Positions 1 through 54,738 of a stretch of 64,000 bases of DNA are shown in pieces. The notes below the pieces were generated by a model. That model was not told where the DNA came from, searched no databases, and was given only the letters and a program-made list of their open reading frames with translations. This DNA comes from Octopus sinensis (lineage: Eukaryota): positions 62,001 through 126,000 of the forward strand of contig NW_021836290.1 in the NCBI RefSeq assembly GCF_006345805.1, read 5' to 3'. Both the position numbers and the translations under genes were made by a program. The first letter of the stretch is position 1. Each line of letters begins with the position of its first letter.

Positions 1-178
1 CAGTTTATATATATACCTATATATATATACCTATATACATATATGGTATATAATATTATATATATATAGATATATATAATATATATTATATAGATATATG
101 TGTGGTGTGTGTTGTGGGTGTGTGTGTGTGTGGTGTGTGTGTTTGTGGGTGGGTATGTGTATGTACATATATATATAC

Positions 179-318
179 GACGGGCTTCTTTTCAGTTTCC
201 GTCTACAAGACTGTGGTCGGCCTAGGCTCTAATAGAAAGACATTTGCCCAAGCCGCCACGTAGTGGGCCTGAACTCAGAACACTGCGGTTCGTTGTCAAG
301 CTACTTATCACCACAGCG
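179..318 (-). mobile_element. tRNA-derived SINE, family A (cephalopod type)
   Basis: Reverse complement matches the plus-strand copy at 26636-26800 (gggcaagtg..ctatagcc..gccgacc..ggtagacggaaactgaaagaagcccgtcg); ends in a TA/TG microsatellite. Confidence 0.75.
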
Positions 319-364
319 CAATCCTACATATTATATATATTATATATTTATTTATTTTTTTATT

Positions 365-3075
365 TTATCTAGTTTCAGCTCACGAGCTGTGGCCATGCTG
401 GGGCACCGCATTTGGTGTTGCTACATGATTTTACTTCGAATGCTTTTAAGCAATTGCCATTTGGGTGCATGAGAGAGTTCGATGCAGCTGCCCTCATCTG
501 CACCTCCTGCCGTGAAGTTGGTCATCTGGGGACACCTGACAGGAAGAGTCCAGTTTTATTTTAAAGACATCTGCATCCACCCCATGCAGGTCTCTCAGGT
601 TCTGGGGAGGATATGAAGAAATATGGGGCCTGAAGCCAGGCATCACATTATCTTGTCCTACATCTTGATGCTAAATTTGGAGTCCTTGGCACTACGCAGT
701 GGCGCCCAGTTCTAGTATTTGTGTGTAACTTCTCGATGCCAAAGTTTGGGACAAGTCCTTCTAGGATCTTCCAGATGTTATTATGGCATATCTTTCTCGC
801 TACGCTCTAAGGATAGAGAGTCTAATCTCTTGGTCTTTCCCAGTAGCTTATAGCTGCACAGAGGCTATCTTCTTAGGTCGTGTAGTTTCGTTGGATCGCC
901 TCAGTTCTGGATTAACTTTGACACTGGATGGGACCATAGCTGAGAGCAATAGTCAAAGTGGCTTAGGACAATATCCTCCAGAGGACATCATGGTTTCTTG
1001 GTCCTCTGTTCTAAAGGTTCTAAGAATCCAATCCGGTCAGCCGCCTACATTTCATTGCAATTAGCAACATGCACATGAAAGGTTGCATCATCACTCATGT
1101 AATACCCAGGTCTCGCACTGATTGTGCCTCTGGGATTGCAATCCCTCCAGGTCCAGCGTATTTATTGGGTATTGCATTTAGTTTGCAGCTGATAGCAAAT
1201 AAAGCTTGAAACTTTTCAGCATTGAACTGCATGCTATCTTTCAGCCCCACTTGTATATTTTTTTCAACTCACATTGCAGGTGTATAGTGTCTTCAGGGTC
1301 TTTCTTATTGCATGTGAAACTTTTGTATCACCGCATAACTTGTGGTCGTGGCTCTCTGCGTGGCTGAGGGCATGCCTGAGAGGACCATTATTGAACAGTA
1401 GTGGTTTCAAAACAGTGCCTTGCGGAACACCGCCTCAACTATTTGCGTGTTAATGGAAGTGGCCCCATTGGCTACATACCACCTGGCTTAATATTGAGGA
1501 AAGTCATGAAGCCGTTCTCCCATTTCCAAACTATGCCAAGATCACGCAGTTTGTACAATATCATTCCATGATCGACTTATCAAAGGCCTTTGCAAAGTCA
1601 AGATAGATTCCCATTTGGGTGGTGAGAGCAGTCGTTTCAGCACCCAGTCATAGTGTTGTAGGAGCTGAGTTAGGCAGCTTCTTCCTGGTCGAAATCATGT
1701 TGGGTGTCAGGCAGCAAGTCATTTTCTTCAAGGAAGGTGATTAGTTTCCTTCTGACTATTCGTTCCATGACCTTACTGATGTGTGAGGTCAGAGAGATAA
1801 GTCTGTAGTTCTTGGCCTCCGCTCTGCTACCTCCTTTATGAATAGGGCATATTTTACCTCTTCAGTTTCTTGGAATTGCCAGTTGCAAGGAAGCTCTGAA
1901 CGAGGAACTGCAGTGGTCTTGCTAGGACTCTCTTACATACTTTTAGAAGGATTGCCGGGAATCCATCGGGGCCAGTAGCTGAGTTTGTTTTCATTTCATC
2001 TATAGCCTTTATGGCATCGTCTTCCTTATATTGATGTAATCATCATCGCTGCCTCTGATTTATATCTGCAGTGGTAAAGAAGTCAGTTGGATTAATGACT
2101 TGAAAATGCCCTAGGGGTGGAGTGAAAATACTCTTGAATTGCTCATTAGTATTTCACTTATCCTCATTGGATTCTATGATGAGTGTGCCATCCTTTTCAA
2201 GGAGTGGCCCTATCCTACAGTGCACCGTAGCTGTTTCTTTTTGGCATACCTGTAGAAAGCTCTGGGGTTAGATTTTATGTTGTCTATAGCCCAGGCTTCT
2301 TTGTCTGCTCTTTCTTTTTCCAATTGTTTTATTTCAGGCGGGACTTTTCACTGCTTTCAATTTGTTTGTTTAGACGATTTGAAACTTTTGTACGCCGTCT
2401 CATTAGAATTTTCCTCTCTCTGGGGATTTTGTTCTTGTGTACAGTGGCCTTTCTCTCTGGGACACATTTGTAGCATATGGCTTGCATTACAGACATGAAT
2501 TGTTGGAGTTTCATGTCGATGGAGAGACATTCGGGCCAGTTTTGTTTGAGGATCCTTTCTCAATTCATTTCCAGTTTGCCTTATGGAAGTTCAAGCTGGA
2601 AAGATTCTGAGAGTTTCTTGTAGACTGCATGCCATGCTTTCCTTTGGCCCGTACATGGTCAGCTCTACCATGTTGTGATCCGAGAGTAGTGTCGGTGTCA
2701 CTTTCACATTAGGATGAGATCCATATTATTTGTGAAGCAGAGATCCAGTATGTTACCTGCCATGGTTGGTTGGAGTATTATTTGCTCCATGTACAGAGTG
2801 TTGATGAGTTCAGGAGGGACCTCGCCTTGTTCTCGTTCGCATCGTGTCATTCCTGGGAGAGAAAGGCCCTCGGGCCATCTGACATTGGGCAGATTGAAGT
2901 CTCCCATGAGAAGTACACTTATGTGTGTTCTAATGTGACTAGAACTTCTATTTTTTAAGGCAGTCTTCAAACTTGCCTACATGGCTTGGGGCATCTGGAG
3001 GGTGATATGTAGCACATATAACTACACCAAGTTGCCTTATATGTACAATTAGTGTGTCACACCGAATTTGAGTAT
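365..3075 (-). mobile_element. CR1-group (APE-RT) LINE, degenerate copy 1
   Basis: Frameshifted remnants on the minus strand: GDFNLPNVRWP and GNILDLCFTNN (APE endonuclease), AFDKVDHG and GVPQGTV-like RT motifs; 3' tail at about 365-420; 5' part cut by (TA)n at about 3075. Confidence 0.85.
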
Positions 3076-3100
3076 ATATATATATATAAATATATATAAA

Positions 3101-3149
<49 letters not shown>

Positions 3150-3214
3150 TAAATATATGATATATATATATAAATATATGTATATATATATATATATATA
3201 ATATATAAAAATAT

Positions 3215-3299
<85 letters not shown>

Positions 3300-3330
3300 A
3301 GATATATCGATAGATATCTATATATATAAA
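3070..3330. repeat. (TA)n microsatellite
   Basis: About 260 bp of nearly pure TA repeat. Confidence 0.95.
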
Positions 3331-3790
3331 CCTGAGAATGTGTGTGTGTCTGTCTGTGTGAATCAATAAACTTGAGAACTACACAACCAATTTTATTCAA
3401 ATTTTGCACATGCCTTACTTAGGGTCCATGTAGTGTTATGGGCAAAAACTTTTAACTTCTTGCCGAGGGCGAGCCCACAGCAATATCATATCTTCTCCAC
3501 TATTTCGGTATTACGTGTTAAAAGTGAAACAAAAACATCTCTGTATTGTAATGTCACATGCTTTCACTTTCATAGTGAAACTAATAAAGTGAAACTAATA
3601 AAGTGAAACTATTATATAAGAGGGATGAACCATTAACAGTGGACATCCATTTTGCTAGAAGAAGATCCGCTATGGTCTTATCTGCTACACACTGGTTCAA
3701 TTCATTTTAATCAAATTAATATTCAATTTTTCACCCTTATTATTTTTAACTTAAATTTACATGTATATATATATTCAAAATGTAACCGCG
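3317..3790 (+). mobile_element. Non-autonomous Helitron, 5' part
   Basis: Starts A|TCTATATATATAAA (canonical Helitron 5' TC after A) followed by a gtgtctgtctgt motif. Body matches 58172-58400, which ends in a Helitron hairpin+CTAG, and 38950-39090. Confidence 0.65.
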
Positions 3791-3962
3791 TGTGTACCGT
3801 TGGCAATTTTTTTCTCCGTCTTCCCTTCTTTGGATCTTTCCTTTTCCTATGAGCTCCGCTCGAAACGTTAAACCCTCCTTCTTTCCTGAGCGTCCAATAA
3901 TACTATATTGTCCACGTCCTCGCGTTGTTGTGTTTTCTCTTTGTGTTTTCATGTTTGGATTA

Positions 3963-4053
<91 letters not shown>

Positions 4054-4719
4054 TAGATGTATATATATATTTACATGTATATATATTATATATATATACA
4101 TGTATATATATACATGTATATCTATACATGTATATGTATAGCTGTATATGTATAAATGTATTTCTATAGATATAGATGTATATGTATGTATATATGTATA
4201 TATGTGTGTCTTTGTGTTTCTCCCTCATCACTGCTTCACAACCGGTGTAAAATAATATGTTGTCGCTAAAGATCCAATAAATTGAATTTCTTTTGATTTA
4301 GAAGTTAGTGATCTGAAAATGTGGGTATCTTAGAGCTGGTCAAAGTGTTTGTTATAGCTGTAATTGTCGCAACACACAACAAAATACACACACAGAAATG
4401 AAAACACTCACACACACTCTCACACTCACACACTCACACAGAAATGAAAACACACAGTTACACACTCACTCACTCTCAAAACACACACACACGCACACAA
4501 CACACAACACACACACGCACGCACACACACGGACACACACACACCACACACACACACACACGGACACATGCACAAGCAATGACCTGGAAACACTCTCTCA
4601 CACATGCGCGCGCACACAGACACAGAAATGAAAGCAAATGGATCGATGTATAGATGTATGTTTGTATATAAGTATACTGTAAAGTGTTAATTTGTATGTA
4701 TAATATATATATTATAAAA

Positions 4720-5135
4720 TATGTCAGTTTCATTTAATTTCTGAACGGTTTTGCTGCCGTTTGTTTATGTACTTTGATGTATTTATCCATTTATTTCTAC
4801 TAAGATAGAGACGCGAATAAAATTGATGATAAAGAAACGAAAAATAACACTTTGGAAACAGCCTAAATGGAGATAACTGAGAAAGACTTGAAAATCAACG
4901 TAAGATCGTAATCATGTAAAGTAAATATAACGAATTATCCAGAATCCTTGTCCGGTACCGGATCGATCACAAAATCTAATCAGTTCGTGCCAATCAGGAG
5001 GCCAAACATTTCTGAAAGTGTCATCCAAATCTAACCAACAGTTCTTGGGATATCTCGTCCTCGGACAAGCAAACAAACAAACACGACTGAAAACAATACC
5101 TCCGTCTTCGCTAAGGCGGAGGTAGTAAAATAAGA
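4720..5135 (-). mobile_element. Helentron/HINE (DINE-1-like) non-autonomous element
   Basis: Terminal palindrome cctccgtctt-cgct-aaggcggagg at about 5099-5122, short (TTTG)n microsatellite, internal palindrome tccggtaccgga. This is the typical HINE layout. Confidence 0.45.
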
Positions 5136-6448
5136 AAATGCATACACATCCCTCACACACACACATACACACAACACACACACACAACACACATATATAT
5201 ATATATGGAGGCACATGTTTTTAACACTCATACGTCTTTGCCATATTGTGACGAGGAAACGGGTGCTAACTGCGGGTTCACAAAATTAGAAATCGACCTC
5301 TGATAACTTAATAATAAGGCCTGAAACTATTTGGAAGAATTAGTTTTTCTAGTCACTAAGTGAAAAATCTATTGTTTAATCATGATCTCTATTCCGTACT
5401 GTGAGACTAAAATGTACGTTTAAAAGGACATGAGAACCACGTTCATCTCGTATTTCTGAGTAACATATCGTTGGGTGGTGCTATCAATAATACAAACGCA
5501 TGTGTGTTTTGTGTGTATGTATATGCATGTGCATTTTAATATATCTGTGTACTTGTATAAATTTAATTGCTGTCGTTATAAGAATAATACATATATCGAT
5601 ATATGTGTGTGTATGCGTATGAATATTTATTGACATCAGTGAGAGAGAGAGTGTGTGTGTGTGTGTGTGTGTAGTTGTATGAAAATAATCGTCGCCTAAA
5701 AATTAATGTTAACTTGACATAATCTTTGGAAACTGAATTATTAGCTGTAAACGCTTTTGTATAATAAACTATTGATTTTGAAAAATATCACTTATTTAAG
5801 GGCATTTATGGCTTTCAAGCAAGTACTTAAACAGGAATTATTAGATGCAAATTATTGTTTATAAGTTTTTGTATTCAACTATTTCTATTAAAAATGTTAT
5901 ATTTTTGTTTCTTTGGTATTTAATTAGCAGCCAAAATAAACCCAATGGATTCGCGTTTCCTGTTTTGACGTATCTGAGAAGTGATGTTATTAATAAAACT
6001 GATTTTATATTTAAACCCGCTTCGTTTTAACGATTTATTATAACAAGCAAATACTTTGTTGAAGGAGCACCAATTGGATAAAATACTGGATAACTGTATT
6101 CTTTTATTCTTTTAGTTGTTTCATTCGTTGGACTGCGACTATGCTGGGATATGACGAAATTCTTAATTATGACAGGTGGGTGGTCTTAATGAAGTATTCA
6201 TGTATTTTTACTATTTATTGGTTTCTTAAATGGGAGGATTATATTTTAGATCTAAGGTGATAGGTAATAAAATACCAATGGAATACAATTGGAGAAGAAA
6301 CTGGTGAACACGTAAAAGATTAGATAGACATATGATGGGCAGAATAAACAAACTAGAGAAAAGACAACCACACCAATTTGAACAATAACATCCACACTAG
6401 TAAAAAATCCAAGAACAAAAACTAATAGTTCTCATCCCATTTTTTCTT

Positions 6449-6668
6449 TTAGAAAACAATAATGACAGTTATCGCGATGGCAATGGTGATGGAAAATCCT
6501 AGAGAAAATAGCCAGATGGAGAACTATTACAATAATCTGTGTCACAGAAACAGTAGAGTGCCGTCATGTTATTGAGGGGCGATGTCCAGTATCGGCAACC
6601 GTTGCTGTCGTCGATGCCCTGCAGCGCACCTTGTTTGTAACATCCCCGGATGTAACCGATCCATCCAT
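6449..6668 (-). CDS. Terminal exon of a Ly6/uPAR (three-finger, quiver/sleepless-like) protein, probably GPI-anchored
   Basis: Strong acceptor ctcttttctcgctttctttcAG (AG at 6670-6669). Phase-1 exon reads GWIGYIRGCYKQGALQGIDDSNGCRYWTSPLNNMTALYCFCDTDYCNSSPSGYF, with the LU-domain RGC and C-x-C-x4-CN end motif. As assembled it stops at TAG 6501-6499; adding one T at the T4 run (6508-6505) gives FSLGFSITIAIAITVIIVF* (TAA 6451-6449). Upstream exons were not identified. Confidence 0.8.
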
Positions 6669-6723
6669 CTGAAAGAAAGCGAGAAAAGAGAATGTTAGTG
6701 ATGAAACAAAAACAAATTTTTAT

Positions 6724-6765
<42 letters not shown>

Positions 6766-6839
6766 CGTGGTGTGTGTGTGTTACACACAAGCATCTCGAA
6801 TGTAAACACGCTTCAGTATATTGTTTTATGTGCAGTCAC

Positions 6840-7080
6840 TACCTGGTGCTTCAAAGTTGTTAACGTGTTATTTTCTGGTCAACACTGATAGAACAATCCA
6901 GACAAATCAACCAGACATTATTAAAGACAGGCTAGAAAATACTTGTAAATTGATAGATGATAAAGAATATCGCTGTTAAGGAATTTGAGAAGTTTAATGA
7001 ATATAAGGACCTGTAAATTGAAATACAAAGGATGTGGCGTCAAATATGTTTCCTGTCACAGCTATCAATATTCGAGCTGA
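6840..7080 (+). mobile_element. R4-like RLE endonuclease fragment (highly degenerate)
   Basis: Translates as TDRTIQTNQPDIIK...KNIAVKEFEKFNEYKDL.IEIQRMW, homologous to the RLE ORF at 19835-20391. Confidence 0.5.
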
Positions 7081-7379
7081 CAGGATAGTTAGCACACCGG
7101 GGTGGAGGAAATGTTTAGTGGCATTTCGTCTGTCTTTACGTTCTGAATTCAAATTTCACTGAGGTCGACTTTGTCTTTTTTCCTTTCGGGGTCGATGAAA
7201 CTTCAAGCCTTGTGCCTTTAGTAGAAAGAGCGCCAATTACTACTGGTATCTATCGTCTACTTTCTTCTTTCACATTGTATTCTTTCACAATGTATGTTGA
7301 TAATCATACATGTTCTTTCTTTTATTCACCATAACATTGTGATCTTTGGTCCAGCGGTAATACTAGGTTGAGGAAAAAG

Positions 7380-9600
7380 TTCAATATTTTTGTGGTGTGT
7401 GTGTTCATTCAGTTCATGACATGTTCATCCCAAATCTAGTCCGCATCTTCTTTGTCTTTCTGTCTAAGCTGTTTAGTTCGTCTATTTTCCATGCCATTAC
7501 TCCTGCTCAATATCTAAGGAGTGAAGTCATTCAGGTGTTGATAGGTTCAATCTTATTCCGTCTGTTTAATTTCGACTTAAGGATCAGTCTCAGTCTACGC
7601 GAGTACTCCAAGCTTAAATTTTTCTGTCAGTTCTTTCTCCTTCAATTTATCCATTTCCAATATCACCAAGGACTTATAGTTTGTTTATTCTGCCATCATC
7701 ATCTACTTCAAAACCTCCCCCGACGGTATCGCTAGCCCATCCATACATTTGATTTTGCCTCTATTCAAGACTAACACGCCATACTTTTTCAGTTCGAACT
7801 CCATTCTGATATCAGCACTGAGAGTATACACCGTATCAACGAGGGAACTGACTTGGGATTCATCTTTACCATAAAGTTTGAGATCATCCATGGATAACAA
7901 GTGGTTGACATTTTGTTGGCGGCTTTTGAATACACACCCACCCTTTGCTTTCCTCAGAATCAGTGTTAGTCATGTCATGCACAGTACAAAGGTCAGCGGT
8001 GACAGGCAGTCGCGTTAGAAGATGACTCTCCTGATTTCTGTTGTCCCTAAACTTCTTCCGTATGCTGTCAGTTCCGTCCGCCACTTCGACATACTTTTTC
8101 CGAGCAATCGCTCAACATTCGATGCAATACCAAATCGGTTCATAATCCAAGGATGTAGGATCATATCGTACGCCTTACGATAATCGATCCATGACATGGC
8201 TAAGTTAGTTTTCCTCCTTGCAAGCTCTAGGCACAGTTTTGTCACTCAGGAGTTGATCCTTGGTACCTCTGCACTTAAGCTTGCAACCCTTCTACTCATG
8301 TGGCAGGACTCCATTTTTCCCCAGATGTTCGTACATTGACTCTGCGAGTATTCCAGTCAATAATTTCCACACAAATGGCAAGCAGGATATCAGCCTGTAA
8401 TTGTATACCGTATTGCCTTTTTCGGTGTTTTTCATGCACATCACTGTCCTACCCATTCTCAATCACTCTGGTGTTACTTGGTCGGCATTAACAAGGTGTT
8501 GAGTTGTGCAGCTATTCGTGCATGACATTCACCAAATCTTTTGGTTCAGTAGTCTTGAAATCCATCTGATCACGAGGCCTTCCAGTTGCCCATTTTTTGC
8601 TGATTTCCTTCACTTCCCTATCTGAAATGACTAGTTCTGCCTGTTATTCTGAATAACCTATTCTGCTGGTAACCTTTCATTCTTTGGTCGTATCTGACCA
8701 AATTTGCTTTCTTTGAAACAAGGTGCTGTTTCAGTTGCTCCATTACCACTTTCAGGCCCTTTCTTTCAACATTATACTTCCTGTTCAGTGCCCTGTATTT
8801 TTGTTCGCTTCTAAGATCTCTCTTTTCTTTTCGGTTTAACACAGAAATGTCCTTCTTCGAGAGCATATCTAAACCCCACCTGTATTCTCTTTTCCACCAT
8901 GGCTCTTTTCTTTTGTCACTCTCATTATATTTCTTTTTCTTGACATCAACACCCACAATTTATGCCACAACAATACTTGCTGCCTTGATCAAATTATTTG
9001 TTTCTGTGATGTTTTTGTCCTGATGTTTTCAGAATTTCAGTCACAGCTTTCGTCTCTTGGTTCAATTTCCACAGATCGACCTTTTTAAGGTTGAAAATAA
9101 TGTCGCTATCATTCCCCCATGGCCTTGGCTTTATTTTGTCGTAGATTGCCTTTTGCCAATCTTTCATGTCATCATTAGTTTTAATGCCTTCTTCCAAACC
9201 ATTTATACGTCTCTCATCGAGCAAGCTATCACTGTTCCTTTCCTGTGGTTTATTAGAGATTTCACCTGTTTTCTGCTATGAGATTATTTTTATCACTCGG
9301 AACTGTATAGTCATCGTTTCCTCTGCTGTTGGATAACGACAGGCTGGAGTCGAAATAGTATCTCTGAGTCTGCCGGGTGTAACATTGTCACCAGTGTTTT
9401 TATTGTAACACCATCACTAGATGTATCATCAATCAGAGCATAGGAAGATTCCAACCGCTTCCTTTCATTATTATCATCATCACTGATATTATTATGTTGA
9501 TTTTTTCCTATTTGTCATTGTTAATATTTCCTCTGATCCGACATGAGTTTTCGCTAAATTATTATTATTAACACTATTGCCACCATCACCATTATTACCA
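7380..9600 (-). mobile_element. R4/Dong-like non-LTR retrotransposon, old degenerate copy
   Basis: Fragments MDDLKLYGK, MSWIDYRKAYDMILHPWI, KEPWWKR; (ATT)n-rich tract at the 5' side (about 9560-9630). Confidence 0.8.
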
Positions 9601-10224
9601 TTATTATTACTATTTCCAATTATTATTAAAAGGTATTATTGAATGACGTTTAGTTTCAACCTTTGTCTTGTACTTGAGACGCTCATAAATATGTGAGTGT
9701 TTCAGGGAATAGTAGGAGCAAGATAGATAGCTTGGTGAATAGATTAAATTCCACAGGTCTGTAAATAGATTCGGCAGACGGTGAAAAGATCTGCAATGGG
9801 CATTCCAGTATGATAAGGAGACAAAAGCGGCCTCATACTCTTGGGATTAGCAGAGGTCAAATGTGTTAACTACTCATAGAGATAAATGAAAGCGTTGACC
9901 TTGGTCTTGAAAAGAACCTAGTCTTCTTGTTCTATTTTTAATTATTGATAGAAAAAATAATTATATATATATAGGTGAGAAAGTTGGTGTGTGAAAGCAC
10001 GTGGTTGGATATATAAAAAATAGAAAAGAGTGAAAAACTACAGAAGGCTTGTGTTATAAGGTTGAAGAATATATTTAAGTCGTTATGTTAGAAAAATGTT
10101 AAAATTTTGTTATAAAATTTTGTGTCATGTCTTCGTTTACATAACGAAGACATGACACGATATAGGTAAAGAAATTTGAGAAATTTGAAAAGTTTACACG
10201 AAACGGGTATTTCTCCAAAAGCTA

Positions 10225-11514
10225 CGAGGGGCGTTCAATAAGTAATGCTCCTGACCCACTTCCCATAGCAGTAGAGCAACGAAACTTGGCACAGTTATTA
10301 GCCTTTTTCTACATAGGAACCACCCAGAGTTACGCATTTCTCCCGTTGTTTGATGCAGCTCTGGAGACCGTTTTTGTAGAAGACCCCAGCTTGGTCCTCC
10401 AACCTGAACGTGACTTCAGAAATCAAGGCTGCACCATCTGGGAAACGCTTTCCTTTCAAAAACAACTTCATGACTGGGAAGAGGTGAAAATCAGAGAGTG
10501 CAAGGTCAGGAAAGTAGGGGGATGGGGGAGGAGTTCATAGCCATACGCCTGTGCTTCTGATCTGGCGACAAGCGAGTTGTGGACCGGAGCGTTGTCATGC
10601 AGGAGGAGGATGCCTTTGCTGATCTTGCCCCGCCTCTTGATTTTGATAACTTCTCTTAATTTCCTCAAAAGTGAAGCATAATAGGCTCCTGCAATTGTGG
10701 TACCCTTTGCCAGGAAATCTGTCATCACTACTCCGTCCTGGTACCAGAAGACTGTGAGCATGACCTTGCCAGAGGAGGGCTGCACCCTTGCCTTCTTTGG
10801 AGGGGGTGAGTCACAGTGCTTCCACTGCATTGACTGGGCTTTGGTCTCTGGATCATCGTGATGGACCCAGGTTTCATCCTGTGTAATCAGTCTTTTGAAA
10901 AATTTTGACTCATCTTCTTGGCACATCTCCAAATTCACCCTCGAGCACTCGACGCGTTCTTGCTTCTGGAAAGGCGTGAGCAACCTGGGAATCCATCTGG
11001 CAGACACCTTTTGCATATGCAAATGGTCATGAATGATAGTTTCCACAGACCCAGTACTAATCTTGACCTCATGGGCTATTTGGCGAATAATTATGCGTCG
11101 ATCTTCCAAAATGGCAGCCTCAACTTGACGGACAGATGCCTCATCAATGGCAGAAGGGGCGACCAGATCTGGGAGATGTTTCCACGGAGTTCCGACTATG
11201 TTTGAATTCACGATGCCAGCGTTTTACAAGGTCATATGATGGGGCATCATCACCATAAGTTACTTTCATTTCATCAAAAGTCTCCCGTGGTGTGAGTCCT
11301 TTAAAATACAAAAACCGGATCACTGCTCGACACTCAACAGGCTCCATTTCACACTTGACTCGGTTCAAACACCTGTAAATCAGAAACCACAATTAATTCA
11401 GAGCTGTAACTTGCCACTCACTCTATAGAGATATAAATGATTGCACATGCAAAATTTCAGCTAGATCAAACAACTGCAAGTGGGTCAGAGGCATTACTTA
11501 TTGAACGTCCCTCG
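10225..11514 (-). mobile_element. Full-length mariner (DD34D) DNA transposon
   Basis: TIRs CGAGGG(G/A)CGTTCAATAAGTAATGC..TGACCCACTT at both ends, TA duplications at 10223-10224 and 11515-11516, length 1290 bp. Confidence 0.95.
10298..11347 (-). pseudogene. Mariner transposase, frameshifted
   Basis: MEPVECRAVIRFLY..PRSGRP HTH region, WIPRLL (WVPHEL-like), QDETW, HDNAPVH and the HPP..PDL..SDF motif; at least two frameshifts; stop TAA at 10300-10298. Confidence 0.9.
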
Positions 11515-11807
11515 TATGTTACTATACACAAAATTTTATAACATTTTTCTAACATAACGACTTAAATATATTCTTCAACCTTATAAAACAAGCCTTCTGT
11601 AGTTTTTTCACTCTTTTTTATTTTATGTATATATGTATATATACTGATGTTCACTTCATTGAATTATTTTTCCTTTGAAATTTTCTTTTCTTTTTATAAG
11701 TTTTACTGTGGTTTACAGTTTTTGTAATTGTGCAGTTTCTATATATTGGCAGGTGATTACCTTCTTAATTTTTTGTTTTTTATCGTGCACTTAATTGTGT
11801 TGTTACA

Positions 11808-12290
11808 ATAAAAGGAATGTTTACATATTCGGTTAGTCAAGGAAAAAAGAAAGATAAAATTTTCACACAAAATTGTAGATATTAAAATTTAAAAAAAAAC
11901 TTTTTTAGATGTTCCTTTATATGTCCGATGAGAGACGACTGTTTTTGCAATAAAAGGATGTCTACATTTTCGAATACTCAAGGAGGAAGGAAAGGAAAGA
12001 AAAGGAGGGTAAAAGTTTTACAGAAAATTGTAGACATTAAAGTTTTAAAAATTTACTAACGATGATCTTTTGTATGTCCGAAAAGAGAAAACTATAGTGT
12101 TCTTATAATAAAGAGGATGTTTGCATTTTCGAATTGTCAGGGAGAAAGAAAAGGATATGTATTCGCAGAAGTTGTGGATATTAAAATTTTTAAAGCTGAT
12201 CGTTTCTGTGTTCGAAAACTATAGATATATGTTTTCTTATTTCGAGGGAAATTTAAAATACTCACAGGAAGTTGTAGATATTCCAGTCTT
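11808..12290 (+). repeat. Degenerate tandem repeat, about 140-160 bp unit, about 3.5 copies
   Basis: Units begin aataaaagg(a)atgt at about 11808, 11949 and 12108, each with ttgtaga(t/c)attaaa and tgtccga. Confidence 0.6.
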
Positions 12291-12375: not shown

Positions 12376-13089
12376 GTTGTTGTTGTTGTTGTTGTTGTTT
12401 TTGGTGAAGTTATTTAGATATAAGATAAGAAATATACGGATAGCCTTTTACCCGAGAATTTTCCACTTAAATGTTTGCATGTACAGTTTCTAGTTCTGCA
12501 TTATCCAGTTCCGGCTTGTTTTGTTTAATATGTCTGTATTACCCTATTTATAAGTGTGACTGTGTGCAAATGCAAGAATTATGGGGGGGGGTTGTATGCT
12601 TGTATTGTCATATGTGCGTACCTGTTTGTATACATATTCATGTGTGTTTGTGTGTAACGATATATGTGTATAACCATGTGTATGTTGACTTACCTTTCAG
12701 GGGTGGGTTTTTCTGCAGAGCGCATTTTGAATATGTGGAATCGCACGTTGAACTTTTGAATAAATATGATTGAAAGTTGCCGCCACAGGCCTTCTCCACT
12801 CGATTGGAGCAATAGTAGCAGGTGAGGGCAGCAACTATAAGAGGAGAAAAGAAAAGAGAATGTGTTATGTTATATAACAGTTAAACGCTGCGAAAGGTAC
12901 CGTTATTCTCGGTTTAAATACCAGTATAGCGTTTTCTTTCTCTCGAAAACTTCGCCTCTGTTTTAGTGCAAAGACCCAATTCCTCAGGAAAAAAAAAACT
13001 CCAGGAAAAATTTGTTTTAAACTTTTTTTAAATCTTCCGATGCCTTGTTTGTACTGGTGATGGAACTATTCATATTTTTACAAAAGAAT

Positions 13090-14519: not shown

Positions 14520-15960
14520 TGTCAATGACTCCCTCTTCTGGGATTCTGGCAATGATGAGAGTATCAAGACCCTCGCCCATTGTCAAAATTTTGTCTTTAT
14601 TTCAATCTACAAACTCCAGAAATTCCTCGTCCTCCTTCCGTATAATTTTCAGAGGCTTGTCCGAGAAATGTTCTACTAGTTCCGTTTTTGTAGTTGATGT
14701 GGTTGTTGTCGTTTTAGTTGTTTTTGTTTAGGCTTCCCCTGTTGCTGATTGCTGATCCTGTTCTGTTCTCGCTGTTATTGAGAATGCTGTTTCAGTTCTT
14801 TTTTGTTCTTCTTCTTCTTCTTCTTCTTCTTCTTCTTCTTCTTCTTCTTCTTCTTCTTCTTCTTCTTCTTCTTCTTCTTCTTCTTCTTCTTCTTCTTCTT
14901 CTTCTTCTTCTTCTTCTTCTTCTTTCTTCTTCTTCTTCTTTCTTCTTCTTCTTCTTCTTCTTCTTCTTCTTCTTCTTCTTCTTCGTCTTCTTCTTCTTCT
15001 TCTTTTTGCTGTTGGTTTGTAACTTTGGTTTCGAGATTTGGCGCAGAGTTCTTCAGCCTGGTGCCCACAAACGTTTGGAATTTAGGAGTTATTTCACCTT
15101 CTCTCTCTCTCATTTTTTTTTTGACGGGGGACTGCTCGATGATCACATACTCGGGTGATTTTATCTCGTCAGAGGCCCATTCTATATCCGAAGAGTTAGA
15201 AATTTTGTTGGACATTTTTCTATCTGCTTGTGTGATTGTTGTTATTGCCGCTGCTTCCCTCTTTGGATCTGTAACGGATTTAGCGTTGGGAATAGTGGTG
15301 CAGTGTGAAGTACCTCTCTCGACTTTTTCACAGAGGGACAGAAAGCTTTTACGTGATAGGTTTTGCAACAAATATGACGCCTGAGTTTCCAACCCTTCTA
15401 TGACCATCCGCATCTATCGTACTCTCCGAAGCAGAAAAAAATCTGGGATTGTATGGACTGCTTCCGGAACAAACAACTGAAACTCCATTGACACTCTTGC
15501 TTTGTTTTGTTGGGCGCTTGTTTTCATGCTTATTGTCTCCCCGTACTCTTCTAGCATTGCCATTACTCTTGCTTGGTCCCTATGAGGAGGTACATTTGAG
15601 AGCCTGGCCTCGGTCACACGACGTCCCATATATAAGGGAAGCATCACCAACTGGTCGGAGGAGTAGGTCACTGTAGCCATCCTGCGCAACTTCCTATTCG
15701 TTGTTGCAGCTGAGACCACAGTCCCATATTACCTTCACTAATGCCTTATAAAAAAACTGATTGTACTCTAATTGCCCTTTTCAAGGCAAACCAATATTTG
15801 TTGTTGACGACTTCCCCCGTCAATTCGGTCTCTGTAGGTTTGATACGCTGGGAGTGACATGTTCAGCTTCCAGGTGGCGAATTGGCAGAATCGTTACCAT
15901 GTTGGCCAGAATCGTTATTACGTTGCTTAGCGGCCTTTTGTCCATCTTTATGTCCTGAGT
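14520..15960 (-). mobile_element. Probable L1/Tx1-like ORF1 remnant
   Basis: RRM-like segment ARLSNVPP..MLEEYGE (15414-15719), then an out-of-frame decayed CX2CX4HX4C knuckle (R-H-I-C-C-K-T-Y-H-V-K-A-F-C, first Cys codon CGT); interrupted by (CTT)n. Confidence 0.45.
14800..15005. repeat. (CTT)n trinucleotide microsatellite
   Basis: About 200 bp of nearly pure CTT repeat. Confidence 0.95.
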
Positions 15961-16844
15961 ACGAATGCCACCGAGGTCAAATTTGCCTTTCAAACTTTTG
16001 GGGTTGATGAAATAAGTATGAGATGCTTTCTGGGATCGATAAAAGAATATTAAACAGTATGTGCACCAATCTCAGATGGGGAAGAGAAGCGAGATTTATC
16101 ATTATTGTTAATAATATGGCGGTTTACTGGTAAAATTGATTAGATGCATTATTTTCTGATACTATAATAATACATTTCACATTTCAGAATTTTTTAATAA
16201 GTTTTAAATGCTTAACAAGAGGATGAAGTGCAGCGCCCTAGGTCCTTTTCAAATCATCTGTATAGGAATGGAGGAGATTGTCCTCGCCCCAAAGAATTTT
16301 TTCAGCAAAGTTATCGATACAAAAGCATCATAAGATCTGGTGGTGGAGATCAACCGATTAATAGACTAAATCAAACATCCTGACGACTTTTCAAGGAGAT
16401 TCCGTCCACCAGAGTTTTCTGGAAAGCTATTAGTCGACCCAAGGTTATAGTAGAAGGACTTGCACAAAATTCAGTGCAGTTGGATTGAACCTGAAACCAC
16501 ATAGTTATGGAAAGAAATTCTTAACCACACAAACGTTATTACATTTACAAAATATTGTGATGAAAGTAGCGGACAAAATATGTTGAGCTCTTCATTTATG
16601 ATGCTTCTTGTCCTGGGCCACTGTTCAGTTTGGCTTTTATCTTTCTTGGACGAATCTAATAAATAGTCACGTAATGAAGTTTAAACAATTGACTGCATCC
16701 TCCTATACATCCTTCCCTTTCCAGAAAGTTGAATCATTGATATAAATACTAAAATAACTATTTGTATTGTAAATTCCAAATATATACATACACAAAGAAG
16801 AATTTACACAGGTACAAACACACAAAAACTCTCTCTCTCTCTCA

Positions 16845-16882
<38 letters not shown>

Positions 16883-18131
16883 TACACACATATACACACA
16901 GATACTTAGACAATACATACAAGCATATATAAGCACATATATTTACATCCACAGACATACACGTAGACAGAAAATACACACGCATACAAAAATCATACAC
17001 AGATGCGCAAATACGCACATGCATTAGAGCAAACTGGGGCGTCCTATGGGGACGAGCTAGATGAGAGAGATATATACATACACACCAACACGCTACTTGA
17101 CTTCGGCATCATAATAACTCTATAATGATATTTTCATTCTTTGAAAATCGTGACAGAACATTGACGTCATGACATTATTTATTGTTTTTGTATAACTTTA
17201 GGCCTCAATAAAGTGGAACTTGCATCAGACATTGCAGCAATGATCATGCTTAGGTGGTGTATGGGTGGCGCCAGTGGTCTTGTGACGTAGCGGTGGTTGT
17301 AGAGTGGTGATGGTGCTGTTGTTGTTGGTTTGGTGGAGGTCTGTTGTTATTGTTGTTCAACCCCAGGTCAGCAGCCTTATCAACATATACATTCCAACCG
17401 TCACTATCCTGTTTTGTTTAGGGATATTTACAATTACTTCTCTTCTAGTTTTAAGAAATTAAACCTTCATTTGAGGATATTTCGTTGCTATTTTTAGCAG
17501 ATAGAGATTCTGAGTAGGGACTTCTAGTTAGCCGCTGCTGGCGTCCATTTCATGGTCAGGCTTCCTTGAACAGACATATAACAAGAAGCATGATTTGAGG
17601 CAGTGATTTGCAATCAAAGCAATTGAATAGCCATTTTAAGTACTTCCTCATCCCCTTCCCGCCCTGCCCCAAACATTTTAAATTCCCATTTTATTTATTA
17701 CTTTGAAGAATCAAATTTTTCGTCGCACCGCTGCAACCTGGTCTTTGACACAATTCTAATATAACTCTAAATTATTATTATCCAATAATTATTCAATATA
17801 TCCTTTGTCTTAAGCTTAAGGTATGAATTGGGGAAGATTTGACTGCTCTTTCTCGCAGTTCAAGCGACTGGTTTGTTTCTCGTGTTGGCTTGTGTTAATT
17901 AGATTCATTAGGGAAGATGTCTGTTTTCCTCATTTTAGGGCGACGTCATTATTGCATAAAGTATTTTAGTACTTTCTCCTCCAAACAAAGAATATAATAG
18001 ATTAGTAACAACGCCCGCAACAAGAACAATAATAGAAACCACAACACTGGCAACGATCTTCACTACCAATGACAGCAGAAATAATGCAACAATAATAACA
18101 ACCATATGAGCTATATCAGCAATAATAACAA

Positions 18132-18171
<40 letters not shown>

Positions 18172-19104
18172 TCAATAATGTCAAAACATTGAAAACACTT
18201 TAACAGAAAAAGCAATAATATCAGCAATAATGATGGAAAAAACAACAAATTAAAATTTTACAAATGTTAGAACAGTTTTGCTTAAAAAAATAAAATAAAC
18301 AAACACTACGTACACCCCGTCATCCGCTCACAGACAGACACATACACAATATACATATCCATTAACATACACATATAGATCAGCACACGCCTACACACAC
18401 ACACACATACACACACACACAATAAGGTAACACATACATACACCTATGCTCACAGATCTGTATGCGCCTTCATATGCACACACACATACATCTGCACATA
18501 TATACACACACATACACATACATCTGCACACATATACACACACATGTACATGACACACCTACACATAAACACGCTACATACACGCTTACATAAAACACAC
18601 ATGCGCTCACACATACACCAATACACACACATACACTCATTCACACCAATACTCAAACACACGTACGTTACTACAACATGGTGCAGTTACCATGACAATA
18701 CTTTCTTAAATCCATTAAGAAATCGGAACACAATGGCGGACATTTTCTTTTGTTCCTCATCATTTTATTGCTGCTGTTGTTGTTGCAATGTTGTTGATAT
18801 TGTTGTTGTTGTTCCTATTACTGTCATTGCGGTAATTGTTATTGTAATGTGCCTGTAATTTCTGCTGCTGCTGCTGTTGTTGTTGTTACTGTTCGTCTCC
18901 CTTCTACTTCTCGACATAAAACTTGTGTCAATCGCGTTACTTTGTTCTGTCTGACAAATTATAAGAAAGACGTCTTACTTTACAAAAACGACGAATATTT
19001 GTACTGTTTACAAAACCATTATTATTATTATTATTATTATTGTTGTTGTTGTGTTGTTGTTGTTGTTGTTGTTGCTGTTATTGTTGTTGTTGTTGTTGTT
19101 GTTG

Positions 19105-19171
<67 letters not shown>

Positions 19172-19176
19172 GGTGG

Positions 19177-19360
19177 TGAGCTGGCAGAATCGTTAGCACG
19201 CCGGATGAAATGTTTAGTGGCATTTCGTCCGTCTTTACGGTCTGGGTTCAAATTCTGCCGAGGTCGACTTTACCTTTCATCTTTTCGTGTCGATAAAATA
19301 AATACCAGTTACGTACTGGAGTCGATGTAATCGACTTAATCTCCTTCCCCAAAGTGCCTT
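19177..19360 (+). mobile_element. tRNA-derived SINE, family B
   Basis: ggcagaatcgttagcacgccgg..gggttcaaatt..gaggtcgacttt..cctttcatc..gtcgataaa..agtaccag. Related copies at about 7080-7230, 19400-19610, 20445-20640, 22420-22557, 28685-28804, 34975-35110, 35740-35835 (-) and 42960-43170 (-). Confidence 0.75.
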
Positions 19361-19640
19361 GAGGCAAAAATTTAAAATCGTCATCATTATTATTATTAAG
19401 GGGGCGAGCTGTCAGAATTGTTTGAACGTTTGACGAAATGTTCATTGGTATTTTTGCCCATCGCTACGTTCTTAGTTCAAATTCCGCCAAGGTCGACTTT
19501 GCTTTTCATCCATTCCGGGTCTATAAATTAATTAACTGTGAAACACTGGAGTCGATAAAATCGACTCATCCCCTCCCTCAAAATGGCTACCCCTGTGGAA
19601 AAATTTGGAACACTCATTATTATTATTATTATTATTATCA

Positions 19641-36137: not shown

Positions 36138-38010
36138 CTAGCAGAGATACCCGGCGTTGCCCGGTTACATTCAATAGAAGAATTAGACTTTCTGTTATAT
36201 ATATGGATACACACACACACACAAATATATGTATATTAATATAAATACATGAAAGTACATGAAGTTTGTTAAAAAAAAGGGATCATGTATATACCTCCTG
36301 GCTGTTGAGATTATAACACCTCGTTGTAAACAATGTTCCTTGTTTTTCCTTGTGGAGTATATACAAAAAGGTTTCTTTTGGTTCCTACTCTTGAGCAGCC
36401 AACATACAGTTGCCTATGCGAGAAGCAGGGCTCTTCCAAGAGAAGACCAGCTACAGAGAGGGTTTGACCCTGAGATTTGTTAATGGACATGGCAAAGCTG
36501 ACACGAAGGGGGAATTGCAGTCTTCTGAATGTAAATGGAATTTCTGCTCCTGATGGAGTAAGAGGAAATCTTGGAATAAAGACGTCATCAGCTTTTCCAC
36601 ATCCAGAAAGAATGATCGTCTCGATAACGTGTAATATCATTTTCTTTATCACCACTCGTGTTCCATTGCTAAGTCTTGGTGGTTCCAGATTGCGGAGTAG
36701 CATTACAGGAGTTCCAACTTTAAGTGGTAATATGTGTGAAGGTAGTCGAGGAGGATCCAGTGAATTGAGAAATTCAGGAGGATAGTTCACAACTTCATTT
36801 ATATCTGGAATTGTATCAACAGAGTTGTAAGTGTGTATAGTGCCGGGAAGAGAATGCATTAGCTGTTGATTAATTTTGTTAACAGCGACGTTTTTTGGAG
36901 CTAATATTGCTCTTTCACACAGCCAATTGTGATTTTGGTAGTTTTGTGTGAAGTTGGGAAAGACTTTGTTTTTGAGGTCATCTACAGAATTAACAACAAA
37001 GGAAAATGACCACACTTCCATTTGTCCTGCAGCATCGAGAGGCATCTTGCCTTCACCAAGTGTCAAAATGTCCTGTGCAAACTTTGTGGACATTTTGTCG
37101 CCGTGTAACTGAGCTCTCATGTTAGTGGTGAGACTAAAGATTGTAACATGATGCCACAGGGTAGAGGACTTTAGGCATGCTTGAACTTCATCAGCTCTAG
37201 TGCCTTTCGGAATGACAGGAAGAGTTTGCCTGAAATCACTTGACAACAGAAGCGTTACACCTCCCATTGGAGCCTGACAGTCTCGGATGTCTTTCAGGGC
37301 TCTATCTAATGCTTCCAAAGCTCCCTTGTGAGCCATAGTGCACTCATCCCAGACAATTACATAACACATTTTAAGTACTTGTCCCTGATCTGAGCTTTTG
37401 TTGATGTTGCATGAAGGCATTTCGGATGCTGCTAAATTGAGAGGGAGATTAAAAGTTGAGTGTGCTGTCCTGCCACCGGGTAACAAAGTAGCTGCAATGC
37501 CAGAGGAGGCTACAGCTACTGCAATGTCCTGATGCTACCTAACTTCTGCAAGGAGAAGCTTTGTAATAAATGTTTTTCCTGTCCCTCCAGGAGCATCGAG
37601 GAAGAGGATTCGTCCCTCGCGTTGGCGTACACTGTTAAGAATAGTTCTGTAGGCATGCAGCTGGTCCGGAAGTAATTTAGGCTTATTTTCAACAATGTAC
37701 TTTGAAAGCACTTGAGTGTCATAGGTTGTTTCACGAATGACAGCAGTGGGAAGGCTATTTGACCCTGACCTGAATGCTTGTGGCAGACCATACGTCGACA
37801 ATTAATTTCCACCCAGTTTAGCAATTCTGTCTTCAACGTCAATGAGTGTTTTGTTATAGATTTCATTGCTGATACCCTCCATGTCAGGATAGAGCAGTTG
37901 AGCTTGGCGCTGAAGGGGACAATGTTTTTGAGATTCCGGTTCGAATCTAAGGCAGGTTTCAAAGTGTTCCCAACAGTTATTAGTTGTAGTGGTAGAGTGT
38001 TTATGCCGAA
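36138..38010 (-). mobile_element. Helitron remnant with Pif1-like helicase and intact 3' terminus
   Basis: 3' end on the minus strand: hairpin ccgggcaacgccggg followed by tatctctgCTAG|T (CTAG 36141-36138); Walker A DAPGGTGKT; no Rep/HUH domain visible. Confidence 0.9.
36311..37801 (-). pseudogene. Helitron Pif1-family SF1 helicase, frameshifted
   Basis: LFLDAPGGTGKTF (37535-37801), IVWDECTM, SDFRQTLPVIP, LRNLEPP.L.NGTR, RLQFPLRVSFAMSINKSQGQTL, YVGCSRV (36311-37486). Confidence 0.9.
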
Positions 38011-39721: not shown

Positions 39722-42185
39722 AGTAGTGTTTCCAGCTGTTTGTCATTTGTAGCGTATAGTTTTAGGTCATCCATATATAAAAGGTGGCTGATCGTTTTGC
39801 CGTAACATTTATATCCGCATCCAGTTCTATTTAGCATATCAGATAGAGGTGACAGTACCAAGCAGAAAAGGAGAGGAGAGAGCGTGTCTCCCTGGAAAAT
39901 TCCTCTTCTAATGGGGATGGCTTAGGTTTTCACTAGTCCCTCTTTTGTTTGGAGCTGTAGCACTGTTTGCCATTTATTCATAGAGTGTCCTATGTATTTT
40001 ATAATTGTTGGTGCTACTTCGTTAATGGCTTGTGTTTCGCGGATCCATGTGTGGGGGATGCTATCAAACGCCTTTCTGTAGTCGATCCAGGCCATACTGA
40101 GGCCTTTCTTCTTTCTGTGGCTGTCTTCAGTTATGGCTTTATTGATCATTAGTTGATCTTTACAGCCATATGAGCCTTTGCGGCATCCTTTCTGCTCTTC
40201 TGGAAACAGGTTGTTTTCGTCCAGGTGCTTGTTTAATCTTTGTGATATTACTGCAGTGAATGCTTTGTACATTGTAGGGAGACAGGTTATGGGTCTGTAG
40301 TTTTCTGGTTTTGCTGTCTCATTGGATTTGGGAATTAAGATGGTTTTCCCCTTCGTGAGCCATTCAGACATTGTCTCTGGCTCTGCCAGTATGTTGTTAT
40401 AGTTTTCAACCAGCTTTTTGTGCATTCCTGTCAGATATTTCAACCAGAAGTTGGGGATCTTGTCATGCCCAGGTGCCTTCCAGTTACTTAGTCTTTGCAG
40501 TGCCTGGGTGACCTCTTCAGTTGTTATGGGGGTCCAAAGTTGCTCAGATGCTGAGTTTGTTGTTTTGATACTCCTCTTTTTTGGTTGTTCTTTCGCCGAC
40601 CATATTTCTTTACAGAATTCTTCCATTTCTTCTGCCGTTGGTGCTGCAGTGATGTCTATTTTATTTTTGCCAAGTTCTTGGTAGAACTTTTGGTGTTTGG
40701 AGTTGAACTGTTCGTTTTGTTCAAAGAAACGTTGGCGTTTCTCATACCGGCGGATCCTTTCTACTTTGACAAGGATATCTTGCTTTAGCTTTTCTTTTAT
40801 CTCAGGTAAATCTTTTTCTGTGATGTTGTATTTGCACAGTATTTTTGCTTTCTTTTTGTTGCTTAGTAGCGTTGATTGTCTACTGATTTCATTAAGAATC
40901 GACAGATCTTTTCTCATTTTTTGTATTTTGTTTTGGATGTTATTTATCCACAGGGTTTGTTTGGGTGGTGGTACTCCTGTTTGGATAGGTTTGAGGGAGT
41001 ATCCAGCTTCTTTTGTGGCTGCAGTGGCTGCTGCATATACTAAGTCATTTAGCTCAGTGATATCGCAATTTGTTTCAGTGGCCAGGTTTATGCTGTTTAT
41101 AATTGATGTTGTTTTTTTGTCTATTTTGATTTTTGGGAGGTATGGTCGGGGGTCCATTTTGAGATCTGTGTTTTTCAGTTCTTTGATTATTCTACTTTTT
41201 ATAGTATCATAATCATTAGGCTCCTCTTCGTTATTTCCAGGTTCTAGATTTGTGTCGCTTTTTTTCTCATTCGTATGTTTGTCTGTCGTGTTTTGGCTTG
41301 CTGCTTGTCGTGCATTATTATGCTTTCTTACGGTCTGGATTTGTTGTTTTTTGTTTACATCGTTTTTGTTTGAAATGTTATGTTTGTCTTCGTGTTTTAC
41401 TATCTCAGTGTTTATATTATTTGGCATTGTTGTGTGGCTTCTATCTACATTTTCCTGATGTATTTTTTCTATTAAATGTTCTATTTCTATTTCTGATATT
41501 TTTTTGCGTTGAGAATATATCTTCGTATGTTAGCTAGTTTATTAGGGTTCATTGCTGTTTCCAAGTCTTTGTTTATGTTATTTTTCTTCCATATTTTATA
41601 TGTATATGTTGTTGTGTTTTCGTTCTTTGGGTAGACCACTGCTGTAAAGTAAGCGTGTAGGATTGAAATGTATTCCTTACGTGTCCATGTATGCCTTTTT
41701 GATTTTATTTGCGGAATATGAGGAACAACGTCCGACCCATTATTTTGACGGTCGTCACTTTTGTAGGGTACCGGTCCGTTCATTTCTGTTGTCACATTGT
41801 TTTGCACGTGTAGTTTTTCGTACTTTTTGTGTAACAAATTTAAAGTACGTACTTCTCGATTGTTATTCTTGGGTTGAATAATACCGGTATTATTTAATTT
41901 ATTCGTAGTGTTTTTGTACATGGTGTTTGGGGCCAGAGATGATCTGTTGTTGATAGATCGTAATGTATCAAGCATGTTTACATGGTTGGAGATGATATTG
42001 AGTTAAAATACATCATTTCGTTTGGAAAATAGCAATAAATATTTCAATGAGTATTACTTACTCGGATATAGTCCAATCCTTTGTCAGTTATTTTTTAGCT
42101 CCATGCGATGTCTTTGTTTCCGATGTTTGTGGATAGATTTCGGAGCACTGTTTTATCGCTCTCACATGTTAAACGTCCCCCGGTG
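39544..42185 (-). mobile_element. R4/Dong-like LINE, 5'-complete, RT truncated at its 3' side
   Basis: ORF pieces 41487-41975, 39922-41427 (WKAPGHDKIPNFWLK, PENYRPITCL, MAWIDYRKAFDSIPH) and 39544-39861 (LLYMDDLKLY, YKYLGI); 5' end abuts (TAA)n. Confidence 0.92.
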
Positions 42186-50820: not shown

Positions 50821-50851
<31 letters not shown>

Positions 50852-51329
50852 GTAAAAAATGAAGTTCGAAAATGCTGCTGTATTATACAATTTTTAATTT
50901 TTATATATACATTATAACATGTTTCAGTTCCTGAAATGAACCTTATCAAAAAAAGTTATATATAAAAAGAGACAGCTCATGCCGTCAAACACAAGAAATT
51001 CATTTATAATACACAACGGAGTCAGACATCTTAGAGTTCATGTATAGTTGATATATAGTTCATGTATAGTTGATATATAGTTTGAAGTATATGTTCAAAG
51101 TGTTCGATGCAGTGGCCCACGGTGGCGATACGTATTCAATACAAAAGCAGATCAAAGTGGTGGAAAGCGGTCAATACAGAAGATTGATGTTTCCGAAAGA
51201 GCGAGGAATTCATTTTTACCTTAAGCAATTGTGATGGCCCATGGTGGAAGTTCGCTGGGTGGTTCTAGTGAGTTTTTGTGAAATGCTCGGTTTTATAATG
51301 CCTGTTAGGTGGTCAATCTAGCGTAGCGT

Positions 51330-51662
51330 GACGTCATCAATGTTTTGACCAATCGTTTCGTTAGGTGGCTTTAATCAAGTGGAACGGGACGTCATCATTA
51401 TTTTGACCAATCGCTGCATTATAACTCCCTCTTGTTTGTTTCCTGTCTTGACCAGTCGCTTCGTTAGTCAAGCATAGCGGGACGTCATCCAGATTCTGCC
51501 CAATCACGACTTATAGCTACATTAGATCTGCCCCCTGTCTGTACTTGTTAGGTGACTATTCAAGCAGAAAAGGACGTCATCAATATTCTGACTAATGACT
51601 GTCCCCTGTTTGTATCCTGTCCATTCTAGCAGAGCTAGACGTCATAAACTTGTTGACCAATC
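51330..51662 (+). promoter_or_regulatory. Array of five GACGTCAT-N8-TGACCAATC-like cassettes (CRE-like + CCAAT)
   Basis: Cassettes start at 51330, 51388, 51481, 51573 and 51638, each with an 8-nt spacer. Regulatory function is inferred. Confidence 0.45.
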
Positions 51663-51829
51663 AGAATCGGGTCTGACCCTTAGCTGTATCGTATGTATCA
51701 GGGTCAGATTTGCACGAAAGAATTTTTTTCCTTTTTTACTAAGGCATATTTCTGTCAGAGTGAGTGTCTGTTTGAAGTAGCGGCCGTGGTGAAATTTGGT
51801 TCTCCTTTTCGGAGGACTTATCTTTTGTT

Positions 51830-54127: not shown

Positions 54128-54738
54128 CGTGTGTCCCTGTTCCTGTGTGTGGGGTCTAAAAAATGGTTGGTGTAGTTATGTTCAAAGCTATTATTTATCT
54201 GTCTCATGTTGTTATAATTGTCAGAGTGAGTTTGTGGTGCTCTGTTCTGGAGTCTGTTGTTGAACCTAGTGTTACGTCTTAGTTCCTCAGGTGTATTGTG
54301 TTGGTAGTTGTTTCCTCCGTAGTGCATTTGTTGTTTGTTATGGTTGTATGGTTGGTTCCTGGGGTGGATGTTTGGTAGTAGCGTTTTGGTTTGGTTATGT
54401 GGGTTGTATTTTATAGTATTGTATGTTATGGCTCTTAGGTTCGTGGAATGGTGTGGTGGGACCCTATAAGTGTTTTGGGGTTGGTGCAGGTAGTGTGGGG
54501 TGCGTTTTAAATGCATTTTTCTGGTGTAGAGTGTGTTTGGATTTCTTGGTGGTTGTTCTGCTCTGTTGGTATGTCTATTTTCGAACTGGTGTGGTGGGCC
54601 TCTGTAGGTGTTTTGGGGTTGGTGTAGGTAGTGTGGGGTGTGTTTTAGGTGTATATATATGTGTATATATATGTGTATATATATATAGTGTAGGAAGAAA
54701 TGGAGCTGAACGAAGACTTAACAAAATTCCTTTTTATT

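Follow-up and report, generated by a model that had tools for sequence, protein, structure and literature searches.

The terminal coding exon of a Ly6/QVR-family gene lies on the minus strand of the window (the whole stretch of 64,000 nucleotides of Octopus sinensis DNA that was analysed). Judged by its sequence, this is the last exon of an ordinary and already annotated gene, LOC115232082. The protein as assembled lacks a C-terminal GPI signal, although the window has the coding sequence for it, undamaged but out of frame, beyond a run of four T residues (T4) that is five residues long (T5) in the sister species Octopus vulgaris. Very probably, T4 is an assembly artefact arising from a single-base under-call, and the real gene would have T5 and an ordinary GPI-type tail; this call is statistical and was drawn from an alignment with the sister species rather than from O. 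sinensis reads. Such an under-call means that the 123-residue RefSeq model of the protein, XP_029657813.1, is probably artificially truncated.

Identity of the gene

A search of a protein collection showed that the exon peptide is 100% identical to residues 68-123 of O. sinensis XP_029657813.1, which is named 'uncharacterized protein LOC115232082 isoform X2', has 123 amino acids and ends in ...SSPSGYFL. The search returned a single cluster comprising this protein and O. vulgaris CAI9737306.1 (140 amino acids; UniProt A0AA36BPL9), whose UniProt name, 'Protein sleepless', is an automatic label. For this gene the collection contains the RefSeq and O. vulgaris entries only, with no independent O. 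sinensis sequence, and none of the protein searches returned the RefSeq isoform X1. An earlier note on this DNA had described the exon as hidden, which is contradicted by its presence in both XP_029657813.1 and CAI9737306.1: the gene and its family are already known, and both the RefSeq and the O. vulgaris annotation include the exon. The exon is, as that note had stated, missing from the bacterial-style list of open reading frames, because the LU frame has no start codon. A literature search found no paper that mentions LOC115232082, no published expression data for the octopus protein and no paper on Ly6 proteins in octopus.

Pfam analysis agreed with the assignment to the Ly6/three-finger (LU) proteins that the earlier note had made from the letters, since the exon peptide alone matches the QVR profile (PF17064, 'Quiver family u-PAR/Ly-6-like domain') with E = 5e-5 and 24.6 bits, spanning profile positions 48-86 of 86, and corresponds to the end of an annotated protein. 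The two full-length proteins, P0001 and P0002, score 44.3 and 43.8 bits, respectively, against a curated cut-off of 27.3, and each covers the profile end to end (positions 1-86 of 86). QVR was the sole Pfam family matched, whether by the exon or at full length. Ten cysteines were counted (C26, 29, 37, 51, 58, 77, 92, 108, 110 and 115), and the LU pattern closes with a CxCxxxxCN motif, here the CFCDTDYCN that the earlier note had picked out in the exon frame. A hydrophobic N-terminal stretch, MNNCKTYLIFTALGILVIQTVAA, precedes the first cysteine and was judged by inspection alone to be a secretion signal. An AlphaFold2 model built on an alignment of only five sequences is weak (mean pLDDT 51, pTM 0.40) and places beta strands at residues 56-59, 76-79, 91-96 and 103-109, while a sequence search of the PDB gave chance matches only (E about 0.9) and no relative by sequence. 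The predicted three-finger fold is assigned from the Pfam match together with the cysteine pattern.

Exons and splice sites

The gene has three coding exons, and all introns are GT-AG and of phase 1. Exon 1, which encodes the signal peptide, is located about 4 kb past the window end, and the remainder of the window outside exons 2 and 3 is intron full of transposable elements. Upstream of the terminal exon, tblastn placed exon 2 at about 12835-12695 on the minus strand with 100% identity; direct reading of the sequence sets it at 12694-12834 (minus strand, 141 nt, phase 1 at both ends, AG/GTAAGT splice sites). Its product, (V)AALTCYYCSNRVEKACGGNFQSYLFKSSTCDSTYSKCALQKNPPLK, contributes five cysteines and the N-terminal half of the LU domain, and the exon is 100% identical to its O. 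vulgaris counterpart.

The terminal coding exon as assembled occupies positions 6499-6668 of the minus strand (170 nt including the stop codon TAG at 6501-6499) and matches XP_029657813.1 at 100%. Read in the frame set by the phase-1 intron, it encodes (D)GWIGYIRGCYKQGALQGIDDSNGCRYWTSPLNNMTALYCFCDTDYCNSSPSGYFL up to this TAG, and thereby the second half of the LU domain with five of the ten cysteines and the end motif. The clean acceptor noted earlier was found on the minus strand at 6669-6692, where direct reading of the sequence shows a polypyrimidine tract and an AG (6670-6669) in the context ...ctcttttctcgctttctttcAG/ATGGATGGATC..., the slash marking the boundary, so that 6668 is the first base of the exon. 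This region is kept in O. vulgaris except for a 2-bp length difference within the polypyrimidine tract (6675-6678) and one substitution in the same tract. A compound (CA)n(TA)n microsatellite, also differing in length from that of O. vulgaris, is located about 55 nt upstream of the exon-3 acceptor (6725-6785, minus strand). Past the coding region, the first AATAAA (6214-6219, minus strand) is a candidate poly(A) signal by pattern match only; it lies 233 nt after the TAA that ends the tail frame described below, and a 1-bp difference from O. vulgaris adjoins it.

A GPI-type tail one frame over

The earlier note had read the assembled exon as ending in SSPSGYFL and had proposed that one extra T in the T4 run would restore a typical GPI-anchor tail by undoing a 1-nt frameshift. 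All three points hold. The assembled frame stops at TAG 6501-6499, and the alignment shows T5 in O. vulgaris where the window has T4 (6505-6508, minus strand), a single-base difference that causes the frameshift. The frame one base back, which one more T would bring into phase, reads FSLGFSITIAIAITVIIVF and ends at the TAA at 6451-6449, whose last base is the coordinate at which the earlier note begins the feature, so that an out-of-frame remnant of the GPI signal spans 6449-6508 on the minus strand. This tail has a maximum 12-residue Kyte-Doolittle mean of 3.13, whereas the assembled protein ends eight residues after CN and has no hydrophobic stretch (Kyte-Doolittle mean about 0.1). Downstream of the T run, the tail DNA of the window is identical to the in-frame tail of O. 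vulgaris, and identity extends over about 100 nt of 3' flank. The sole substitution in the coding exon is at 6516 (minus strand), where the window has TCT (Ser) and O. vulgaris has ACT (Thr); apart from the T run, the exon therefore shows no decay.

The orthologue CAI9737306.1 is encoded by the same three-exon gene at a collinear O. vulgaris locus (OX597833.1; L001), and the two species split about 2.5 Mya (PMC10700109). The two proteins are identical save for the Ser/Thr difference and the C-terminus: O. vulgaris has T5 and a complete hydrophobic tail, and the window model is 17 residues shorter. The O. vulgaris protein ends in ...CNSSPTGYFSLGFSITIAIAITVIIVF, which matches the predicted 19-residue tail exactly. 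Its organisation is that of a GPI-type signal, with N-S-S at the attachment position, a PTGYFS spacer and then 17 hydrophobic residues, LGFSITIAIAITVIIVF (Kyte-Doolittle 3.13).

A hydrophobic C-terminus also occurs in Argonauta hians and two other relatives, and an exhaustive HMMER search extended the comparison to 61 relatives. A strongly hydrophobic stretch follows CN within about 10-30 residues in 57 of the 60 motif-bearing proteins, a count that takes in the query and the window model. The three tail-less proteins are the window model itself and two short, possibly partial models (P0018 and P0038). Across this family the tail reads as ancestral and constrained. Two transcript-like Logan contigs, L002 (SRR30826389) and L003 (SRR30826393), encode a tailed QVR relative of 136 amino acids (P0004; 44-47% identical). 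An exact-protein look-up of P0001 found no matching contig.

Missing bases around the exon

About 43.3 kb of the window could be aligned collinearly to the O. vulgaris locus, and this alignment served as a yardstick for single-base differences. It contains 376 substitutions (0.87%) and 133 one-base indels, in which the window is the shorter sequence 85 times and O. vulgaris 48 times (binomial p = 0.0017). Homopolymers of at least five bases are contracted 16 times in the window and 4 times in O. vulgaris; the imbalance is slight among runs that are exactly five bases long (4 contractions in the window and 2 in O. vulgaris, of about 183).

The differences are distributed very unevenly when only clean events are counted, for which 12 identical flanking bases were required on each side. 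The segment from 1 to 15 kb, which includes exons 2 and 3, has 42 clean substitutions and 35 clean 1-bp indels (ratio 0.83), the window being shorter in 27 and O. vulgaris in 8, whereas the 49 kb from 15 to 64 kb have 151 substitutions and 15 indels (ratio 0.10), divided 9:6 in the same order. This contrast in indels relative to substitutions is highly significant (Fisher p = 3e-10), and a ratio of 0.10 is within the range expected for real divergence. In 4-kb bins, the counts of window-shorter to O. vulgaris-shorter indels are 14:3, 5:2 and 7:1 over the first 12 kb (26:6 in total) and fall to 0-2 per bin beyond that point, so that the excess of single missing bases, likely a sign of under-polished consensus, covers positions 1-12000 and includes the exon. 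Had indels occurred at the rate of the clean region, the first 15 kb should contain about 2.5 in which the window is shorter; 27 were seen, which implies that about 90% of them are artefacts before selection is considered. The focal T4/T5 indel does not itself count as clean, being only 8 nt from the substitution at 6516.

Substitution density is not raised in the first 15 kb, so neither a divergent haplotype nor a locally faster clock accounts for the excess. Of the 27 missing bases, 12 do not belong to a homopolymer, as is typical of the deletion errors that remain in a long-read consensus. Illumina data were used to polish the O. vulgaris assembly, which has a reported QV39 (PMC10700109), equivalent to about 6 errors per 43 kb. 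For O. sinensis, the assembly is based on PacBio reads and has a genome-wide BUSCO completeness of 95.7% (PMC10700109). At this figure coding regions are usually well polished, and the argument for an artefact thus depends on the locus being locally poor. The counts show the first 15 kb of the window to be such a place, which points to local under-polishing of the long-read consensus. Other features within positions 1-12000, such as the reading frames of transposable elements, may also bear artificial frameshifts. No paper on frameshift errors in this O. sinensis assembly was found in the literature search.

Artefact or real change

The earlier note had offered two explanations for the frameshift, namely a homopolymer error in the assembly or a real, recent switch to a secreted protein. 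The local indel excess strongly favours the error and disfavours the switch. A genuine T4, present as a heterozygous allele or fixed in O. sinensis within about 2.5 My and giving a secreted, soluble LU protein, is unlikely, even though T4 appears in both the assembly and the RefSeq model and leaves the LU domain and the signal peptide intact. A stop codon in the last exon escapes nonsense-mediated decay, so decay is not expected and the truncated product could be made. One-base changes in the opposite direction also exist in runs of five bases (2 of 182) and some are probably genuine, and P0018 and P0038 are two more tail-less members of the family, though maybe through being partial models. 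The excess of missing bases around the exon (27:8; 0.83 versus 0.10) nevertheless makes an artefact roughly ten times likelier, and selection should act against the loss of a tail that 57 of 60 relatives retain. The undamaged state of the tail DNA points the same way, but 2.5 My is too short for this to carry much weight.

The exon also shows no further sign of becoming a pseudogene. No splice site is damaged, exon 2 matches that of O. vulgaris at 100%, exon 3 carries one substitution and no other lesion is present, and the same local excess (27:8) applies; that a real T4 marks the start of pseudogenisation in O. sinensis is thus highly improbable, despite the fact that the frameshift takes away a conserved functional element. 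We give least credence, and very little indeed, to a real T4 compensated during expression, whether through tRNA-Phe slipping by -1 on U UUU or through transcriptional slippage. On the U4 run a -1 shift would allow perfect re-pairing and give ...GYFSLGFSIT..., as in the O. vulgaris protein, but there is no canonical X XXY YYZ heptamer, and the 113 nt from the run fold like shuffled controls (z = -0.38; 61 of 200 shuffles as good). A programmed -1 frameshift was rejected on both counts, the lack of the heptamer and of downstream structure, and efficient transcriptional slippage needs a run far longer than four U. Two other routes past the stop codon were tried and rejected. Were the TAG changed by A-to-I editing, the protein would gain WDFPSPLPSR before the next stop but no tail, and the only upstream GT that could define a mini-intron removing the stop gives a 32-nt intron and an in-frame TGA.

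With T4 taken as an under-called T5, the practical value of the finding is curatorial, as it identifies a probable consensus error in RefSeq XP_029657813.1. The first 12 kb or so are evidence that many single bases are missing from local patches of the assembly. Frameshifts or 'lost' C-termini in O. sinensis gene models therefore call for comparison with reads or with O. vulgaris before an evolutionary reading is made. As biology the case carries little weight, the gene being ordinary and annotated and its odd feature probably not real. Were T4 true, it would amount to a Lynx-to-SLURP-type switch by a one-base deletion, between sister octopus species and within about 2.5 My, and would be a minimal example of membrane-tethered Ly6 modulators turning secreted.

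Predicted protein and known LU proteins

The native protein would begin with the signal peptide encoded by exon 1, continue with an LU domain of 10 cysteines from exons 2 and 3 and end in a C-terminal GPI-attachment signal. In this signal, small residues from the Asn of the CN motif onward would be followed by a short spacer and the 17-residue hydrophobic tail. By analogy with characterised relatives, the protein would enter the secretory pathway, a GPI anchor would replace its C-terminal signal at the Asn of the CN motif or close by, and at the cell surface the LU domain might then assist or modulate channels or receptors, or take part in assembling junctions. The domain family, cysteine pattern, gene structure and tail conservation are direct observations; from the characterised relatives we infer a role as surface modulator or in junctions.

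Ly6 proteins occur in GPI-anchored forms, such as Lynx1, and in secreted forms, such as the SLURPs. Mammalian GPI-anchored LU proteins (Lynx1, CD59 and the Ly6 antigens) resemble the predicted octopus protein in having a signal peptide, one LU domain and a GPI signal, although they have no detectable sequence match to it; the mammalian genes have three coding exons and phase-1 introns. As assembled, with a signal peptide and LU domain and no tail, the octopus protein is instead like the secreted LU proteins SLURP-1 and SLURP-2 and the snake three-finger toxins. This secreted-type architecture is true of the assembled sequence, but it hangs on a base call that is probably wrong and against which the local error signature (27:8) speaks, and all close relatives of the octopus protein are tailed. 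A toxin gene, considered on account of the three-finger fold, was rejected as a candidate: every relative is a tailed, QVR-type membrane protein, nothing marks the octopus protein as a toxin and nothing suggests venom or expression in salivary glands.

A further parallel is with Drosophila QUIVER/SLEEPLESS and the insect Ly6 proteins of Pfam QVR, which share a single LU domain on the full QVR profile, ten cysteines, a signal peptide, a predicted Asn attachment site and a hydrophobic tail. Drosophila SSS is GPI-anchored and N-glycosylated, its predicted GPI attachment site is an Asn, and it binds Shaker K+ channels and nicotinic receptors (PMC4735452). Drosophila QVR/SSS members bind and modulate Shaker-type K+ channels or nicotinic receptors, or act in septate junction assembly (PMC4735452). 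The insect Ly6 family as a whole has varied jobs in sleep and excitability, septate junctions and nociception. The octopus gene is assigned to the QVR branch as a whole rather than to Drosophila sss as a one-to-one orthologue.

Transposable elements in the window

The first intron of the Ly6 gene is long and contains several transposon-derived reading frames, which lie at 36311-37486, 10468-11211 and 39922-41427 (all minus strand), and comprise a PIF1-like helicase (Helitron-type), a mariner-type transposase fragment and a further reverse transcriptase fragment. A 3.8-kb segment at 50850-54671 is represented by only 63 bp at the collinear O. vulgaris site and contains a 765-residue open reading frame (51830-54127, minus strand), whose product has a reverse transcriptase and a GIY-YIG domain. 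From these domains the segment looks like a Penelope-like retroelement, which probably either inserted after the two species separated about 2.5 Mya or is polymorphic. On the plus strand at 59920-63129, an uninterrupted open reading frame of 1069 amino acids encodes an apurinic-type endonuclease and a reverse transcriptase of the LINE type, and lies in a G+C-rich island (48-55% versus about 36% elsewhere). This LINE is about 98% identical in O. vulgaris, which lacks a 214-bp segment of it (61928-62141). Finally, 4.7 kb of the window (14904-19615) are outside the collinear chain, the corresponding O. vulgaris interval being 5.8 kb, and this mismatch is repeat turnover or rearrangement within the intron.
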